DNA of 64,000 nucleotides from Adineta vaga (GCA_021613535.1 CP075497.1:248001-312000); one strand, 5' to 3'; counted from the first letter of the stretch, positions 1 to 10,672 are shown. Program-made: numbers and translations. Notes: generated by a model not told the origin, from the sequence alone.

Positions 1-187
1 TCTTCTTTCTTTCTATTCCTATTTTAATTTTATTGTCAATCATTGTTATTCTTATCAACATATATAATAAAGAAAGAAGATAAGAAGCTCGAACCGATTG
101 AAAGCATTCTTTATGCACTAAATAACTTTTTGATTTGATAGCATCTTATTCAAACTTCTAGATAGTACACAAACATTACTATTAGCA

Positions 188-2287
188 ATGGACATATCAG
201 AATCTAATAGAAAATTCTTGTTGAATATTTTCCAATATATTGCACCATCACATATAGCTTTATTCTTACGTCTTATTAGACTGTATCCAATGAATATTCT
301 CAACGATAATAGGAAGAGAGAACAAACGATTTTGACTATTGTTAATGAAGTTACTGGTAATAACTATCAAGCCGATATTTGGCCAAACATCATGTCGATT
401 AATCGTCTACCAGAGTTAGTTGAACAAGTTCTACTCAATGATGAACATCAACGATTATTATCGGCTATTGAAAAGTTACAAACAAGATTTGAATTACAAC
501 CACATCGTTTTCGAATCTATCAACTACTTCCAAAAATCAAAATATGTGTTATATGTGGAAATCAATTGGGAGAAGCCATTTTCGATGAAATATGCATTAT
601 TATAGGTCGTACTAATATAAATCATGGAGTACTTTATAAGAATGAATGCTGTAATATTGTTTATAAATATGGACATGCACGCAATCGACGAACACGTGAA
701 AGATTTGTTGTACCAAATGCAATATTCAAACAAGAATATATTCATTTATTCGATCATTTAATATATGAACGCTTATTGTTAATTGGATTTACTAATCTTA
801 TTCAACAAGCGGCATCGAACTTTCAAACATATACAAGTGCAACTAACGCTGATATTGATCAAAATCGACATTTTAATGAACAAGATTCTACTCAAGATAA
901 ACTGCAATCAAAATCGTTTGCATCAGTAAATATTGTTAAATGATTATCGATGAAAAAATTCTCATTTTTTTCGATTATTCTCATATTAGACTTGGATATG
1001 GTTTGAAATATCTCGATATCTATTGTTTATGACTAATTCACAGACCATTCAAATTCCAGATATTATCCAGCGCTTATCTCATGATTTATATTTCGAAGCA
1101 AACAGCCTTTATTTTTATGAACTTTTCGTTAAATTTTGGTCTCGACATGGGCAAGTCAAAGGATGTGAATGTCAAGCCAAAGACACATGTATGCTCAATT
1201 TTGTTTTTGACACACATATGAAGGCGCATCGATTAGTATGTGCATACACTGGATCATGTGATGAATCAATACCAGAATTAGGACCTGTAGCTATTGGCTG
1301 TCCTCGTCCACCACTTCGTTCATCATCAAGTATATTAAAAAATGAATTAGGTATGTACAGAGAAGATTGTTCATAATACAGTTGTTGATTCTATGTATTT
1401 TTTTCTTCGAAGTTAATGATAAGATGAAATGTAAATACTATTGTATAAATCATTACAATCAATCTTTAATTAAAAATGATTCACACGATCCTTTAGTTAC
1501 TGAAGCACTTGAACGAGATCGTATTGCAGATTTATTCGAAGCAAATGATGAATGTACCGTTCATCGTGATGAAGATGATAGAGAACATAAACGACGTACT
1601 GCTGGATTTATGGCTATAGTATCCAATTGTAACATTATCATAGGATGGAATGAAAGTGTTCGTTCTGAAGGAATGCGTCGTAATACTTATCATCTATTAA
1701 AATACCTTCATTTAGGTGGAATATTACCACCAGCTGCTGCATATGATTCAGCATGTACTTTTATTGCATATTTAAAAAATCAATATTGTTTATCAATTCA
1801 ACAATCACCTTATGTCGATGAGTTATTACAAAAAAAATACTGTATTGATAGATTTCATAGACGTAACCATACACGACCTGAATGTAAATCAACGTTATCA
1901 TGTTCACATCCTGATAATCGCCCATTTTTCGATAATGAAAATACACAAGTGTGTGAACAATTATTTTCTCATTTCACAAAACTCAAAGCTACTTTACGAT
2001 CAATTGCCTGGCCATACTCGAACATCTTCTATTGTATTATTTTCCACTTGCGAAACTGTTTTTATACAAATATTTTTCCAGATAATTTGTATTTATCTGT
2101 TGATTCAAATATTCCACCACCAACTATGAAATTGATTCCATGGAATCAAATTTTGGTAAGAATTAAATAAATTTATTCAACTATAGATACATAAATCAAA
2201 TATTTTCCTTCATAGACGCATAATGGTTATCAAAATGACAAAACAAAAGAAGAAAGTGATGAGGATGATTTGGATGATGCATATTGA
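188..2287 (+). CDS. KDZ (Kyakuja-Dileera-Zisupton) family transposase with Cys-cluster domain, intron-containing, apparently intact
   Basis: Exons 188-925, 990-1351, 1413-2155 and 2216-2287 splice in frame through GT-AG introns. Motifs: CVIC..CC cysteine cluster, FVFDTHMK (D), AYDSAC (D), IDRFHRRNH, NTQVCEQLFS (E), acidic tail. An extra upstream exon is possible. Confidence 0.8.
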
Positions 2288-3655
2288 ATATGAGTTAATC
2301 TAATAAACAACAGATAATGTTTATAATGATGAAAGTTGTCAATATCTATCCTCGTTATATCTCATGCTGTTAAAGCAATTGCTTAATATCCTCATTATTG
2401 TATATTTAATCTACATTATGCATTGTAATTCGAAAAAATATTTTGAATATGTGATCTCGTATTAAAATTATATGAAAAAATCGTCATCTTTCATTTAATA
2501 TATTTCTCAACATTCATAATCTTTTATTGTAAATTAACTAACGAAATCCATAGAACAAAAACCACATTTCCATTTTATCAATCATCGACATCATTGACAT
2601 ATGAATTGCTACATTTACTAGTCGTCACACAATTATCTTACGATATGTTTCCTTTGGATCATTTTTGTTGATTGTTGTCGAATTGCATATTTTCTATCTT
2701 TTCAATATGAAAATATAGAATTAAAGTACATAAGATATTGTTTATTTCTCTCTTAATCGAAACAATTAAAGACATAGAATCGATTGAGTACGATATTGCT
2801 ACAAGAATATAACTTTCAATTAGTATTGAGATTTCAATATTCATATACACATCAATGCTGTACTGTTCATAATAAAACAAAGAATTCTCTCTCTTCAATC
2901 AAGAATTACATGTGATGGCGGAAAAGATTTAGTATCTACAACATTACAGCTGATCTCATGAATTTCTCTATAAAATATGACTTCGTTTAAATCTCTCTCG
3001 TTGATGCTGGTACAAAACATAGCACTAGTTATAAATTTCATGAAAGTAATCTACCGGTAAATATGTTTGAAAATTTATGCCTCATGAGATTATCTATAAT
3101 GAAAATATCTTGTTGACTCGAATAAACGACGAATTGGAACTTCTAAATAAAGATTATTGTTTAGTATCAATCATGGCTTTCTTTCGCTCATATATTTGAC
3201 TTGTGCATGATATTTTATTATTTTATGATTTTTATGATAAAATTCTTTTTCAACTTATTCTCGTATTAATTAATTCACAAACAGTGACAGAAAATTAAAA
3301 AACAAACAATTCTTTCGAAATAAATTATCACATTTTTTTTGTTTATTTCTGTCGAATAGCATTGGACTATGAAAGAACAAATCAAAGAAATCAATAGATG
3401 GCATATTATTCATTTCACGTTTATTGTCCTCTAATCTCTTTATGAAAATCATATCTATCTATGTAGTAAAATTTGGACATAAAGGAAAACTACACATATA
3501 AATCAATAAATAAACACGATACTTAGGTATCTTTTCATATCTCAAGTGTCCAATTCTGATCGTTTATTCTGCGTAAATACCATCATTTCTACTGTTATTT
3601 TCATGTTGTTTTTTCAGATTCGTTTATTTTTGAAAGATCTTTTATTGAATTGAAT

Positions 3656-5595
3656 ATGTTTAATGAAACTGAAATCATTCTAGAAAACCTGAAATCGATT
3701 TCTTTCGAGTAAGTGCTTCAGATATGACTTTGTCAAGTAAATTTTACTCTTATCTCATGATAGAGAAAATCTTCTCGAGCGATATGAGATGAATATTTCA
3801 TCTTCAAATACAAATCATGGTAAATATTTTTGATATTGGTGTATTAAAACAACCTCTGTGATTTTATCTGTTTAAGATAAAACATCCGGTCGATTTTGTG
3901 CTCGTGGAAGAGCCGTTCGTGCATATACAAATATTTTGCGATTTGGTTTTGAAAAAAATTCGTTGTCGTCAACATATGAAAATATTTCAGACAGCGATAA
4001 AATTGTTACAGAACAACAATCATCAATATCACAGGCAGCACTACAAAATGAATATCAACAGAAGAATTTATCCTTGGATATGCAAAAGGATCCATCTTTG
4101 GATATGCCAAATAGTTCGTCTTTGAATATAGAAAACAAGTAAGTTTGGATGTTGAAATAAATTTCAATCAAAAAAACAATAACGCTTTAGATAATTTTGA
4201 CATAATAGATAGAGAGTGCAATGTTAATAGAAATAATGACTGAGTTTCCTGATTTATCGTTGAAAATCTGGAAGTATTCGGTTAAAAAAGATTAAGAGTG
4301 CTTATGAGTTGAAGTTTTTGATAGTTGATAGAAAGAAAACGTATAATTATTTTTGTCTTTGTTTAGAAATGAATCAGAAAAGATCTTCATTGATCGCCAT
4401 AGTTTGTCTCGTATCGAAATTGAAGAAGAAATTGGAAATATGGTCAGAAATGTGTTGCGATTTGAACGTGGAAAATCATCTGAACAATTATATATGGGTG
4501 ATTCTCATTGTCATTTCGATGTACTTTTCGAAAAGTAATATAATTCTTAATAATTTTTTTCTTTCTCAGCTTATCTATTACATAGATTAAATTGCCCTAA
4601 TCAATCAATATGGTCGTATATTAAATATAATTATAAAATATATGAATATGGTATCGACATGCAGTTGATTATTCAAGTATATTTTGCACCAAAGCATTTT
4701 AACCGTGGTAAATAGAAATTTATATAAATATACATATTCAGTATTGATAATATTATTTACCCTCTATCTTCAGATAATTGGCTTATGATATATTCTAAAT
4801 ATATGGACCATGATATTATATATGGGAAATGCGGTTTACATCCTGTATTTGCTCATCATTTCAATCTTCAAATGGAATTGAATATTCGCAAAGCAATCAA
4901 CCATCCTCGAGTGGTTGCCATTGGAGAAATCGGACTGGATTTCCGTAGGTATGATCATATAGGTTAGAAATGAGTTAAAAATTTATTCATGAATTTATTT
5001 ACTTTTAGTGCACTTCGACCATCTGAAGAATCTCAAATTTATGCGTTCGTTCAGCAGTTATCTATCGCTCGTGAGAAAAACCTTCCAGTAGTAATTCACT
5101 CACAGGAAAGCTTCATGGAAACATTGGAAATTCTATGTCAAGTAGGAACAGTTTCTAATGAAAACGATATATAACTGAACGTTCTATTATCATCTTAGGA
5201 ATTGCCAAAGAATTACCCGTTATGCTGGAGACACTTTGAATATTCCTTGGAAGAATTGGATATGTTGAAGTCGAGATTCACAAATGCATATTTCGCATGT
5301 AGCCCATGCATATTCATAAATCAAAATTTTAAAAATGTTATTCAACGATTGAATATCAATTGCTTACTTATCGAAAGTGTATCCCCACATTTAATGCTCA
5401 ATGAGGTAAGATATTTCATACCTTACTTTAATACGAAGGATGACTTTTTCGTTTTAGTGTCCTCATGTGTGGGACACTCATCCGATATTCGTTGCGAAAG
5501 TGCATGAATATGTTTCAGCAATATTTAATTTGTCTATTCATGAAACGGCACATCGAATTATTTCCAACATGAAAACGTTTTACAAGATAAACTAA
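3656..5595 (+). CDS. TatD-family TIM-barrel nuclease with N-terminal extension, atypical active site
   Basis: About 9 exons join in frame. Motifs DSHCHFD, GLHP, VVAIGEIGLDF, LPVVIHS, LLIESVSP (canonical ETD). Stop TAA at 5593-5595. Confidence 0.85.
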
Positions 5596-6250
5596 ACTTC
5601 GATGCCTTATAATGATATTGTTTGCATATTTTGTTATTAGTTATTTGTTTCTTTTTTTATTATTGTTTTCTTTTGAAAGCCCAACTATGAATGAACATCA
5701 TATTGTCTATTTGTTATTAACATCACAATTTTTGCATATTTGAATAAACAAATGCATAATAAAAAAAGAACAAGTCTAAATAAAATCAATCATCGCTATT
5801 GTTATTTATATTACACGAATTTCTCACTGAAACGATATCAATATCTTCCAATCTTGATTGAAAGTGAAAGTCTATTAACAGCTTATTCATGTATCTTACA
5901 CAGATAATGACAAAAATCAACAAATGATTTTTCATTTGACTTTATTTATTCTACGACATTGAGTTAGAATTCTATTAAATGATTGGCATTCCAGATCGAT
6001 CGCTATATGGCATGTATTCTTTCGAACTTCCACAGTTGAGTGAAACTTGAAACCTGAGTCTAATTCAAAGTTTCATCGATGTTTCCACTCAACATTAAAC
6101 GAATTGAATCTATTTGCTATACTTCCATAAAAACATTCCGGTTCAAAAGTATTAATTTTTCTGCGTATTATGAATGATCGATTACGTAACAACACATGGT
6201 TATGCTCTTTTTATTTCCCTTTTCAATGGCGGCAAATTCGATGACTCAAG

Positions 6251-6615
6251 TTAACATGGGTACGGTATATACATATCTATATATCTATATATAAATGAAA
6301 CTATATCTATTCCTATATTCCTAACTTAACATGGGTGGGGTATATATATCTATATATAAATGAAACTATATCTATTCCTATATTCCTAACATAACATGGG
6401 TGAGGTATATATATCTATATATAAATGAAACTATATCTATTCCTATATTCCTAACATAACATGGGTGAGGTATATACATCTATATATAAATGAAACTATA
6501 TCTATTCCTATATTCCTAACATAACATGGGTGAGGTATATATATCTATATATCTATATATAAATGAAACTATATCTATTCTTATATTCCTAACTTAACAT
6601 GGGTGAGGTATATAT
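6251..6615. repeat. Tandem array of about 5.3 copies of a 65-bp unit
   Basis: Unit WTAACATGGGTGAGGTATATATATCTATATATAAATGAAACTATATCTATTCCTATATTCCTAAC starts at 6251, 6326, 6391, 6456, 6521 and 6594. Confidence 0.95.
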
Positions 6616-6733
6616 GTATATATATATATATATATATTTATATTGATGTATATATATATTTATATTGATGTATATATATATTTATATTTATATGTACATA
6701 TTTATATTTATATATATATATATATATTTATAT
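6608..6733. repeat. Imperfect (TA)n microsatellite
   Basis: TA runs with repeated TTTATATTGATG interruptions. Confidence 0.9.
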
Positions 6734-6790
6734 TCGAATTGATATGATGCTTGTGAGTGTCCATTTATATTATAACTATAATTAGGCAGC

Positions 6791-7849
6791 TCATGGATTG
6801 ACTTTCATTATAAACAGAATTCCTACCTGATCAGGATTCCGCGCAGCTTTTTCAGCAAATCTGAGCGATATTTTACGCTTATAACTTGTTGATAAAAAAC
6901 TATTAAATGAAATGAGACCACCTTTGTTTTGTTGCAATTGTTCGAAGTCAATGGTGGAAAGACCTTCTCCACGAAACAATACTATCATAGTATGTAATGA
7001 TACAACACCAAACTGTTGTTGATAAAGTTGTTCAATATGTTGATGAAGATCTTTGATAAAGAAAGCCATTCGTATGATAATATCTCCATCCAACAATCGT
7101 AATGCTTGATTGAGCATTGGATGTAAAAAACAATGAAAAGTATAGCACCAGATGGGTGTATTCTCTACATATGCATTTTCTATTTTCTGAATGCTTTTCA
7201 TATCATCTAAATTGTTAGCAAAGACCTGTCGACAGTAGTTGATAAAATCTTGTCGATGAGTTTCATTAAAATGAATTGTAAATAAGACTTCTTTAATGAT
7301 TTGTGTGTACATGAAAGAAGGCGGAAGTTGATCTGCTCTCTTTCCAGATGCAACGATACTGATTGGTGTTGCATTTAGTTCTACTAGTTCGACTGTTTGT
7401 TTGAGTGCTTGACAAATTGGTTGAATATCTGTGAACACATCTTTGATCTTTGACCAATCTTTTGTCCATTGTTGATGACGTTTTTTGTCACCACAAAATA
7501 TAAAAATGGAGTCTATTTGAGCCATGTCATGTATACAAGGTACAATATGTTGTCCAAGAAAACCAGAAATAATCATACAAACCTTGTTATTGTGAATAGA
7601 TTCAATGAATTCAATACATTCATTACTATTTGTGAATGTATTAATATCACTAATAACGTTTTGTAATTGATGAATAGTATTTTGATAATCTTCACTATAT
7701 TCGTTGATGTTACTATCCAACCAAATGAGAAGAACATTTTGAAGTTTTTGCTTTCTTTCATGTCGACGACTAAGATTATCTTTGGAAATTACTGATGTAT
7801 TTCCCCTAGTATTAGTGTTGTTTGAAGCTGTCGAGTTGTTTTTACTCAT
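6791..7849 (-). pseudogene. 5' part of a receiver-like/ADP-ribosyltransferase(-TPR) gene, truncated within the ART domain
   Basis: Collinear with the N-terminal third of 41354-44524 (LIWLD, SFMYTQ, LFRGEG, FLSTS, GILF). It stops before the E-x-E motif and the TPRs. Confidence 0.85.
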
Positions 7850-8949: not shown

Positions 8950-10672
8950 TTAAATAAGTTGAAATCTTTGAATACGATTATTGAACCAATCAGTAACATA
9001 CATATATGTTTCATTAGCATTTAAGGCTAATCCTATCGGATAATTCAGCATAGTAGCATTGGTTCCTGGAATACCATTAGAATTTCCTGCAATAGTAACA
9101 CCTTCACTCGCTCCTTGTTCCCATCGTTGAATTCGATGATTATTACTATCTACGATATACATAGCTCCTGTTTTCTTCGATATTCTAATATAATTTGGAC
9201 GATTTAATTGATTATTTCCAATTCCAACTCCATAACCACCAGCTACAACGATTCCAATATAGGGTCGTGTACCATTAATTGTATATCGTATTATTCTATG
9301 ATTATTTGAATCGGCAACATATAACCATGATTTATATCTATCAAATTCTAATCCAAATGGTCCATCAAGACCTGTCAAAGTATTTTCTGGTATATCATGA
9401 CCAGCAATAGTTGTGGCATTAGTAGAATTTCGTGGCCAAACTACAACAATATTTCCCCAATAAGCAGCAGCAAATATATTCTTATTATTATCAATCTGTA
9501 TTCCAGCTGGTCCATCCAAATGATTCGCTCCCGATCCATCAATATATCCACTACTTATAACGACAATTGGTGATGGTAATTTAACATTTTGTATATTTGA
9601 ATATAATATAATTCGAGCATCACTATAATCACTAACATAAAGATCATATTCGCCATTTCTATCATCAATATATAAATCATAAGGAGATTGTAGTGAAGAA
9701 CCAGGAGCCCATTCAGTTGCCACTATTGAAATATTTCTATAGGTCGTACTAGCATCCCATATAGCTACAATACGATTATTATTTTGATCTACAATAACAA
9801 TTGAATCAATATCTATACCAAACACACCAATTCCTGAAAATCCACTAAGACCAATAGTTGAATTACTATCGACGATAGTTGTCCCATCCATAATTGTTGT
9901 AGCAGAAAGAATTGATAATGCTATAAATAGAAGAAAAAAAAAAGTATTTACTTTTTTAATTGAACGCATAAAGTTGAAGTATTCAAGTAATTTATATAAG
10001 ATCAAATATGAAAGTAGAAGGAGAATATTATTTCTATTTCTCAATTACTTTGTACTGTAAAATACTATCTGGAAGACAATGAAAAACAAAAACGAAATAT
10101 TTATAAAACTTACGACCACATTGATTAAATTGTAAACATATATAATTAAGATCTTCTCGACACATATTCATATCTTGTTGACAAGATGCACCTAAGATAG
10201 GTAATTGTGGAATACACATAGAAATCGATGAATTCCAATATGTATGTGGCATACATTCACATAATAAACTTGTACTACATTGTAAATATCGACTATGATG
10301 ACAAGTAGAAGAACATAAACTATTGTATTCAAGAAAAAGATCTGATGAAAATTGAATTGTACCAACTTTTGAATTCGATGATGATGATAAAACAATACTT
10401 CCTAATGTATTTGTATCACCTTCAAATAATCGACATTGTTTAGGTATATCTACTTCATAATCAAAGATACGACATTGAACATTATTAGTACATTGAATAA
10501 AACATTGCATGAATGAAGACATAAATGTTGTTGAAATTAATTGAGCAGATAAATTAACAGGAACAAATTTAGTACCTGGATTTGATATAATAATTAAGGC
10601 TGTATAAATTGTTTGAGAATAAATTAAATTAAATATTGAAAGAAAAAGATTCAATTGATATATCATCGACAT
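8950..10672 (-). CDS. Secreted PAN/apple-like plus Cys-rich plus NHL-repeat beta-propeller protein
   Basis: Exon 1 (about 10672-10114: signal peptide, CFIQC..CRIFDY..CRLFE, Cys-rich segment) splices to exon 2 (9920-8950: YVADSNNHRI, YIVDSNNHRI, YVTDWFNNRIQRF). Confidence 0.85.

Follow-up and report, generated by a model that had tools for sequence, protein, structure and literature searches.

The first 6795 nucleotides of a 64,000-nucleotide stretch of the genome of the bdelloid rotifer Adineta vaga (GCA_021613535.1, CP075497.1:248001-312000; this whole stretch is referred to below as the window) very probably represent the right arm of a complete DNA transposon of the KDZ group, with ends closest to those of Zisupton and Dileera. 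The genome was searched as a 100.8-Mb assembly of six contigs (designated C1, C2 and so on), in which the window corresponds to C6:248001-312000, and all searches with the spliced genes were carried out exon by exon. The element, designated copy A, spans C6:218731-254795 (36,065 bp; -29269 to 6795 in window coordinates), 0.22-0.25 Mb from the start of C6, and its right-hand 6.8 kb lie in the window. From left to right it consists of a terminal repeat, an array of 65-bp units, a gene for a P-loop protein, the KDZ transposase gene, a TatD-like gene, an inverted 65-bp array with a TA tract, and the second terminal repeat. The original prediction, made from the window alone, had proposed the right arm of a large KDZ element; the left terminus was found, and the whole element measures 36 kb. 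Copy A is a real, complete and probably still competent transposon.

Ends of the element and the interrupted host gene

Copy A is bounded by imperfect inverted repeats of ~36 bp, which match at 28 of 32 core positions, and is flanked by a perfect (8/8) duplication of its 8-bp target. At the left junction host DNA runs up to GATTGACT and the element then starts with GAGTAGCTGCCTAATTCGAC... (that is, GATTGACT directly followed by GAGTAGCTGCCTAATT...), and at the right junction the element ends as ...AATTAGGCAGCTCATG at position 6795 and is followed by GATTGACT again.

The insertion separates two parts of a host gene of the minus strand, referred to as ART-TPR. The frame of the minus-strand open reading frame (ORF) that holds the 5' part enters the element and reaches a stop codon at 6791-6793, within the terminal repeat. 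The 3' part had been reported missing from the window in the original prediction, which called for a search to the left for this half, a matching terminus and a target duplication. It was located beyond the left end of copy A, at C6:217719 to ~218730 on the minus strand, with a match to TPR_12 (E = 1.5e-52), and the inverted terminus and the 8-bp duplication were found as well. No Pfam match was obtained for the 5' part (6796-7849), and the "ART" label is a reading of motifs. In paralogues of the host gene at C1:14.369, C5:13.021, C3:1.098 and C2:0.870 Mb the sequence matching one flank continues directly, to the base, into that matching the other when one copy of the duplication is left out of account; in this comparison each host flank was searched on its own against the genome and the halves were not joined. 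These contiguous paralogue flanks are the equivalent of an empty site and fix the element at the coordinates given above.

The transposon reading as a whole, in which we place high confidence, includes a cut-and-paste insertion into the ART-TPR gene with an 8-bp target duplication. Because the halves of the host gene on both sides of copy A are still open, it is suggested that this insertion is not ancient. The insertion had also been described as recent, which applies in the relative sense given by the perfect duplication and the open host-gene halves and does not extend to the TatD-like gene, which is an old component (see below).

Two further full-length copies (B and C) were detected on C1, and the three copies share 65-84% nucleotide identity and the gene order P-loop, KDZ, TatD-like on one strand. 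In a blastn comparison of 20-kb regions, homology of the window locus to two C1 loci begins ~6.4 kb left of the window. Copy A alone is free of stops in every aligned exon of the three genes; copy B has a frameshift and stops in the P-loop gene, and copy C has stops in the P-loop gene and in KDZ exon 2.

Both types of end seen in copy A recur in the two other full-length copies and in a set of short derivatives. A genome-wide count gave 107 occurrences of the terminal motif and 0 of a reversed control. Many of these occurrences lie in pairs 255-430 bp from each other. About 100 further termini, distributed over all six chromosomes, belong mostly to short derivatives of 255-426 bp, whose identity to the nearest copy is mostly 91-97%. 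Among the 24 short derivatives that were examined, an 8/8 duplication was observed in seven (six of them independent) and a 7/8 duplication in one; together with copies A and B, nine insertions show perfect 8/8 duplications; these figures are far above chance. These short derivatives are potential ready-made donors for a transposition assay. Two 366-bp derivatives (C3:17503661-17504141 and C3:19521761-19522241) are 100% identical and have the same flanks and the same duplication, ACTAGGCT; as read from the sequence, this pair arose by recent segmental duplication over a distance of 2 Mb and not by two insertions.

Table 1. Position of copy A, its components and its full-length relatives (window coordinates unless a contig is named).
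Feature	Position	Strand	Remarks
Left copy of 8-bp target site duplication	C6:218723-218730		GATTGACT
Left terminal repeat	C6:218731-218766		begins GAGTAGCTGCCTAATT...; outside the window, to the left
Left 65-bp satellite	C6:218850-241390		~347 units, 22.5 kb (TRF)
P-loop gene (gene 1)	C6:243379-247740	+	left of the window; at least 9 conserved exon blocks
KDZ transposase gene	188..2290	+	predicted exons 188-925, 990-1350, 1413-2155, 2216-2287, then stop codon
Spacer between KDZ and TatD-like genes	2291..3655	.	poorly conserved
TatD-like gene	3656..5595	+	putative start at 3656, as in the original prediction
Right 65-bp array	6278..6626	+	5.2 copies, 91% matches (TRF)
TA-rich microsatellite	6609..6733	.	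between array and right terminus (TRF)
Right terminal inverted repeat	6760..6795	-	element ends ...AATTAGGCAGCTCATG
Right copy of 8-bp target site duplication	6796..6803		GATTGACT; in the window
Interrupted host ART-TPR gene, 5' part	6796..7849	-	352-aa ORF 6791-7849
Copy B	C1:16179025-16194518		15,494 bp; same two end types, perfect 8-bp duplication
Copy C	C1:18059899-18074523		14,625 bp; both ends

The transposase, P-loop and TatD-like genes

The KDZ gene comprises plus-strand ORFs at 188-943, 1023-1376 and 1367-2170. Removal of three predicted introns with canonical GT-AG borders (926-989, 1351-1412 and 2156-2215) gives a stop-free model of 637 amino acids, and a 634-amino acid product is annotated at the equivalent place in Rotaria; the four-exon structure, with a short acidic last exon (2216-2287), is a prediction from sequence. 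The third ORF/exon matches the Pfam family KDZ (PF18758) with 30.5 bits (cut-off 26.6, E = 3.6e-07), and the KDZ gene of copy C scored 33.9 bits in the genome profile scan. In an alignment of copy A with 13 relatives the columns DG..K..R, YD..C, DRFH..NH and NTQ.CE..FS are present, the D of FDTHMK being located in exon 2 and the last three motifs in exon 3, all on conserved columns. The residues D111, C114, D145, H148, H152 and C157, which are nearly invariant across the alignment, are present in copy A, and consensus columns are likewise occupied by the exon 2 D and the E of CEQLFS; the catalytic assignment of these residues follows the general DDE pattern. In exon 1 the motifs CVIC and CC fall on CxxC consensus columns; the exon gave no match to a Pfam CxC family, and one rotifer relative matches CxC5. 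The KDZ exons of copy A are 77-92% identical at the amino acid level to those of copy B, where they are also stop-free. Based on this evidence, the predicted intact spliced KDZ transposase with D-D-E motifs holds.

The P-loop gene lies outside the window, to its left. Removal of a 58-nucleotide GT-AG intron brings together a Walker A motif, GTSGSGKS, in its N-terminal part, and the Rotaria homolog keeps this motif as GTSG...GSGKS. That coding conservation sets in directly at the fifth block's acceptor argues for a single gene of ~1,250 amino acids. The Rotaria annotation divides it in two products (398 and 706 amino acids); in the Rotaria copies no exon pair was readable through a retained intron toward the annotated 398-amino acid ATPase, and the introns hold stops. 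Proteins ~50% identical to the largest exon were detected in Rotaria species. An ESM Atlas search with one exon of this gene gave no usable match, nor did Pfam and PHROG scans of a Rotaria protein. In searches with sequence profiles, primase-polymerase PF09250 had no match genome-wide at E <= 1, and no primase family was found in the per-exon Pfam and PHROG scans. Assignment of the P-loop gene to DUF3987 (PF13148) was not supported: the genome scan with this family matches other loci only and the BLASTP matches were not significant; comparison of the exon profiles with an alignment of 15 rotifer DUF3987 sequences by hhalign gave a probability <1%, the weak alignments being collinear.

The N-terminal portion of the TatD-like gene (3656 to ~4140) is weakly conserved and contains a 24-bp repeat at 4062-4129; it is followed by six conserved exons at ~4353-4534, 4572-4710, 4755-4937, 4999-5148, 5199-5405 and 5458-5592 and then a stop codon. 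These six blocks (4353-5592) are stop-free, and three of them match Pfam TatD_DNase (PF01026) with 39.1, 29.4 and 17.6 bits; in six-frame translation the score is 86.8 bits, spanning profile positions 45-208. A search of PDB sequences with TatD exon 5 returned no relevant match. The exon blocks are conserved in copies B and C and in Rotaria. Comparison with copy B by blastn gave just two short matches in the spacer between this gene and the KDZ gene (3373-3427 and 3612-3713), and a translated comparison of the copies found no conserved coding block there.

The closest host paralogues of the TatD-like gene are located at C2:7.37 and C5:10.96 Mb (47-48% identity in the best exon). Element and host gene (C2:7.37 Mb) have six introns at the same positions and in the same phases: the first three after HCHFD.(I/L)F(D/E), after Q(V)(F/Y)..P.H.. 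and before NW, and the other three after GLDF.., after the block ending ..L(M/C)(K/Q) and after SP..M..E. Since these six introns are shared, the gene was captured at the DNA level from a rotifer TatD gene including its introns; it is neither a retrocopy nor of bacterial origin. The host paralogues resemble the element gene in the six introns and in an N-terminal extension ahead of HxH; unlike them, the element gene shows a Val in place of the Asp of ETD, has lost His ligands to a varying degree, lies within transposon ends and is multi-copy. An additional host TatD gene, at C2:8552801-8553595, is intronless (304-amino acid ORF; full Pfam profile, 215.8 bits), the other paralogues being intron-bearing.

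The host paralogue keeps all motifs of the family (HCH, GEIGLD, IHSR, HCF and ETD) and thus the complete set of TatD metal ligands, which none of the element copies has. Where the host has ETD, the element has ESV (copies A, B and Rotaria), so that the beta-8 Asp is Val in every element copy in which this stretch aligned. In the amidohydrolase superfamily this Asp is a metal ligand and the general base. In the order HxH, Glu, His, His and beta-8 Asp, the ligand positions read HxH, E, H, H and Val in copy A; HxY, E, H, Q and Val in copy B; YxH, E, I and N in copy C (whose beta-8 stretch did not align); and YxH, E, I, N and Val in Rotaria. Only copy A, among these four, has a whole HxH. Motifs away from the active site (GEIGLD, NLPVV and THPIF) are conserved. 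A same-strand, intact TatD nuclease gene had been predicted here: the strand, the stop-free exons and the family agree with this claim, while the activity as nuclease is put in doubt by the replacement of the beta-8 Asp and by the loss of other ligands in most copies.

Selection was estimated from the ratio of nonsynonymous to synonymous divergence (dN/dS) by the Nei-Gojobori method, summed per exon without joining. For the P-loop gene the ratio is 0.26 in both comparisons (A vs B and A vs C), for KDZ it is 0.14 (A vs B) and 0.25 (A vs C), and for the TatD-like gene 0.23 (A vs B) and 0.25 (A vs C), the latter gene being near synonymous saturation. These values indicate purifying selection on all three genes. 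For the TatD-like gene, purifying selection together with degenerate, non-conserved ligands gives the pattern of a pseudo-enzyme. As the ligands have been lost across copies, selection on this family cannot be acting on a nuclease active site.

The same set of genes is present in Rotaria. In Rotaria sp. Silwood2, three contigs encode products of 398, 706, 634 and 809 amino acids (the last one with PF01026) on one strand and in the order of copy A; all exon blocks of the three genes were recovered in Rotaria by tblastn, with a conserved left terminus reading GAGTAGCTGCCTAATTCGAG.... The TatD-like gene is thus read from these comparisons as an old, selected and retained component common to Adineta and Rotaria and not as a recent pick-up. 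That TatD and the array travel with KDZ transposases, as had been proposed, is confirmed by two more loci in A. vaga and by Rotaria; the KDZ element extends past position 3600, and the TatD-like gene is not a single-copy, syntenic host gene.

Proposed roles and competing explanations

It can be proposed that the KDZ transposase would bind the terminal repeats and probably the 65-bp units too; subterminal repeats serve in this way in other transposons. The P-loop and TatD-like proteins would be putative accessory factors for transposition or for maintenance of the element. Because the metal ligands are not conserved, the most likely identity of the TatD-like product is that of a non-catalytic, nucleic acid-binding TIM-barrel protein, an assignment to which we give an even chance.

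A more demanding proposal is that all three gene products are obligatory parts of one transposition machine in an animal; it is put forward by analogy and regarded as rather unlikely. The KDZ transposase would then need a dedicated P-loop NTPase as regulator or target selector, like bacterial MuB, TnsC and IstB. It would also depend on a catalytically dead TatD-fold protein, taken over from a host nuclease, for the recognition of a DNA or RNA-DNA structure in the subterminal 65-bp repeats or in the target. The likeness to Mu (MuB), Tn7 (TnsC) and IS21 (IstB) consists in a P-loop NTPase beside a DDE transposase and is a functional analogy only: the rotifer protein has ~1,250 amino acids, and a role in target choice or in the transpososome is speculation.

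It is less likely than the non-catalytic role that the TatD-like gene is functionless cargo, a host fragment that was taken up once and is decaying, with the KDZ transposase being sufficient for mobility. In favor of this explanation, the loss of metal ligands is patchy and differs between copies, and the TatD-like gene evolves faster than KDZ (34-67% compared to 58-92% amino acid identity between copies); furthermore, most of it is absent from a decayed Rotaria copy, and no TatD was found near more distant rotifer KDZ families. Against it stand the low dN/dS of the gene (0.23-0.25), the aligned exons of copies A, B and C, all of them stop-free, the preservation of six introns and of the exon structure in Adineta and Rotaria despite saturated synonymous sites, and the conservation of GEIGLD, NLPVV and THPIF away from the active site.

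At most as probable as the cargo explanation is the possibility that copy A encodes a TatD-like protein with nuclease activity that would act on DNA ends or RNA-DNA hybrids during transposition. The HxH, the Glu and both later His residues are kept in this copy and the host relative has all canonical motifs; however, the beta-8 Asp is Val in copies A, B and Rotaria, and copies B, C and Rotaria each miss two to four other ligands.

That no mobile element exists at all, and that a host cluster of a domesticated KDZ gene and a host TatD gene was spread by subtelomeric segmental duplication, is highly improbable: there are only three full-length copies with 65-84% nucleotide identity, two of them near chromosome ends, and all three genes are under purifying selection, but in every copy homology ends exactly at the inverted termini, the target duplications of copies A and B are perfect over 8 bp, the interruption of a gene by copy A is precise, and ~100 further termini in short derivatives, several with 8-bp duplications, are spread over six chromosomes.

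Several observations weigh against the transposon reading or parts of it. Empty sites for copy A are known from paralogues only, and no excision, polymorphism or empty allele was seen. Copy C has no target duplication, nor do 16 of the 24 short derivatives. The splice models are all predictions. In the comparison of copies A and B, synonymous divergence (dS) is ~1.5 for the TatD-like gene (proportion of synonymous differences, pS, 0.65) compared to ~0.5 for KDZ (pS 0.37), and this inequality suggests that the copies may be mosaics or that rates are very different. The decayed Rotaria copy keeps only the first TatD exon. No exon of the P-loop gene had a match in Pfam at E <= 1, or any in PHROG, and an AlphaFold2 model of its largest exon (433 amino acids; 12 sequences) reached a pLDDT of 36.8. 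Finally, the accessory role of the P-loop and TatD-like proteins is putative.

Subterminal arrays and relation to known elements

The 65-bp array, the TA tract and the sharp junction that had been described in the window were all confirmed in place, the element ending at 6795. By blastn, the right array is inverted with respect to the 22.5-kb left array. Arrays of 65-bp units are present at both ends in copy B and at the TatD end in copy C. Copy B has ~17 units at its left end, and copy A has 5 at the right end compared to ~347 at the left, where a higher-order period of 268 bp was observed. The left array of copy A is a transposon subterminal repeat turning into a satellite, and it shows the expansion of such a repeat to 22.5 kb. 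Just inside this array lies a G+C-rich stretch (C6:241490-241700; surroundings 30% G+C), at the left margin of the conserved block that copies A and B have in common; it contains a 67-amino acid ORF without a Pfam match.

Zisupton and Dileera were reportedly described as KDZ-group transposons by Bohne et al. 2012 and Iyer et al. 2014. Both have inverted terminal repeats and 8-bp duplications, whereas Kyakuja has 7-bp duplications and no inverted repeats (Kojima 2025, PMC12730594). Copy A resembles the former two in its terminal inverted repeats and 8-bp duplication, and Kyakuja does not fit. With Zisupton and Dileera it has in common, furthermore, the KDZ-type DDE transposase and the ability to carry extra genes; unlike them, it has a bdelloid host, a P-loop NTPase and a TatD-like gene instead of TET/JBP, and long inverted 65-bp arrays. 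Before the 2025 survey only Zisupton had been well characterised as a complete transposon, and the cargo described was the fungal TET/JBP dioxygenase (PMC12730594). In the fungal KDZ, Plavaka and other transposons that carry TET/JBP (PMC12730594), a host-type enzyme gene lies within complete ends and is co-mobilised with the transposase, as in copy A, which differs in that the extra gene is a TatD-fold homolog with degenerate ligands, that host introns are kept and that an ATPase gene stands alongside.

Full-text literature searches, with Repbase and Dfam entries outside their scope, returned no paper pairing TatD with KDZ or Zisupton, and the gene set P-loop, KDZ and TatD-like is unreported in the literature found. 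In the Hox cluster of the giant squid a "TATDN2" gene is located beside POGK and ZMYM1, both of transposon-derived types (PMC6962438); TatD-like genes may ride transposons in other animals too.

Few eukaryotic DNA transposons are as poorly understood as the KDZ elements. The family described here is an animal one with exact ends, a proven 8-bp duplication, one copy with three open genes and two conserved extra genes. It also offers a clean case of a host enzyme gene that was captured with its introns and kept under selection while its active site was lost.

Close protein relatives are all from bdelloid rotifers. The KDZ core of copy A is 30-38% identical to those of more distant KDZ families, which include three other loci in A. 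vaga (C1:17431913-17437687, C5:775614-779358 and C3:18351180-18358053). At these three loci a DUF3987 P-loop ORF lies 2.5-6 kb from KDZ; unlike the P-loop gene of copy A, these ORFs are intronless and bona fide members of the Pfam family (72 bits for the best). ATPase partners, this suggests, are common in rotifer KDZ elements. Near the distant KDZ families no TatD was found in Rotaria magnacalcarata, Didymodactylos, a contig of a Sphagnum assembly or the three A. vaga loci. At C1:17431913-17437687 the DUF3987 ORF has 408 amino acids and lies on the minus strand, and relatives of the DUF3987 P-loop ORFs are widespread in Adineta and Rotaria. The contig of the Sphagnum troendelagicum assembly (CAXANY010000059.1, 24 kb) has a KDZ gene 37-38% identical to the copy A core; its nearest relatives are all from rotifers, and it may represent rotifer DNA in a moss sample.

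Within the window, the next gene past ART-TPR is a 364-amino acid ORF on the minus strand (8950-10044), with an N-terminal hydrophobic stretch and repeated motifs of the NHL/six-bladed-propeller type.

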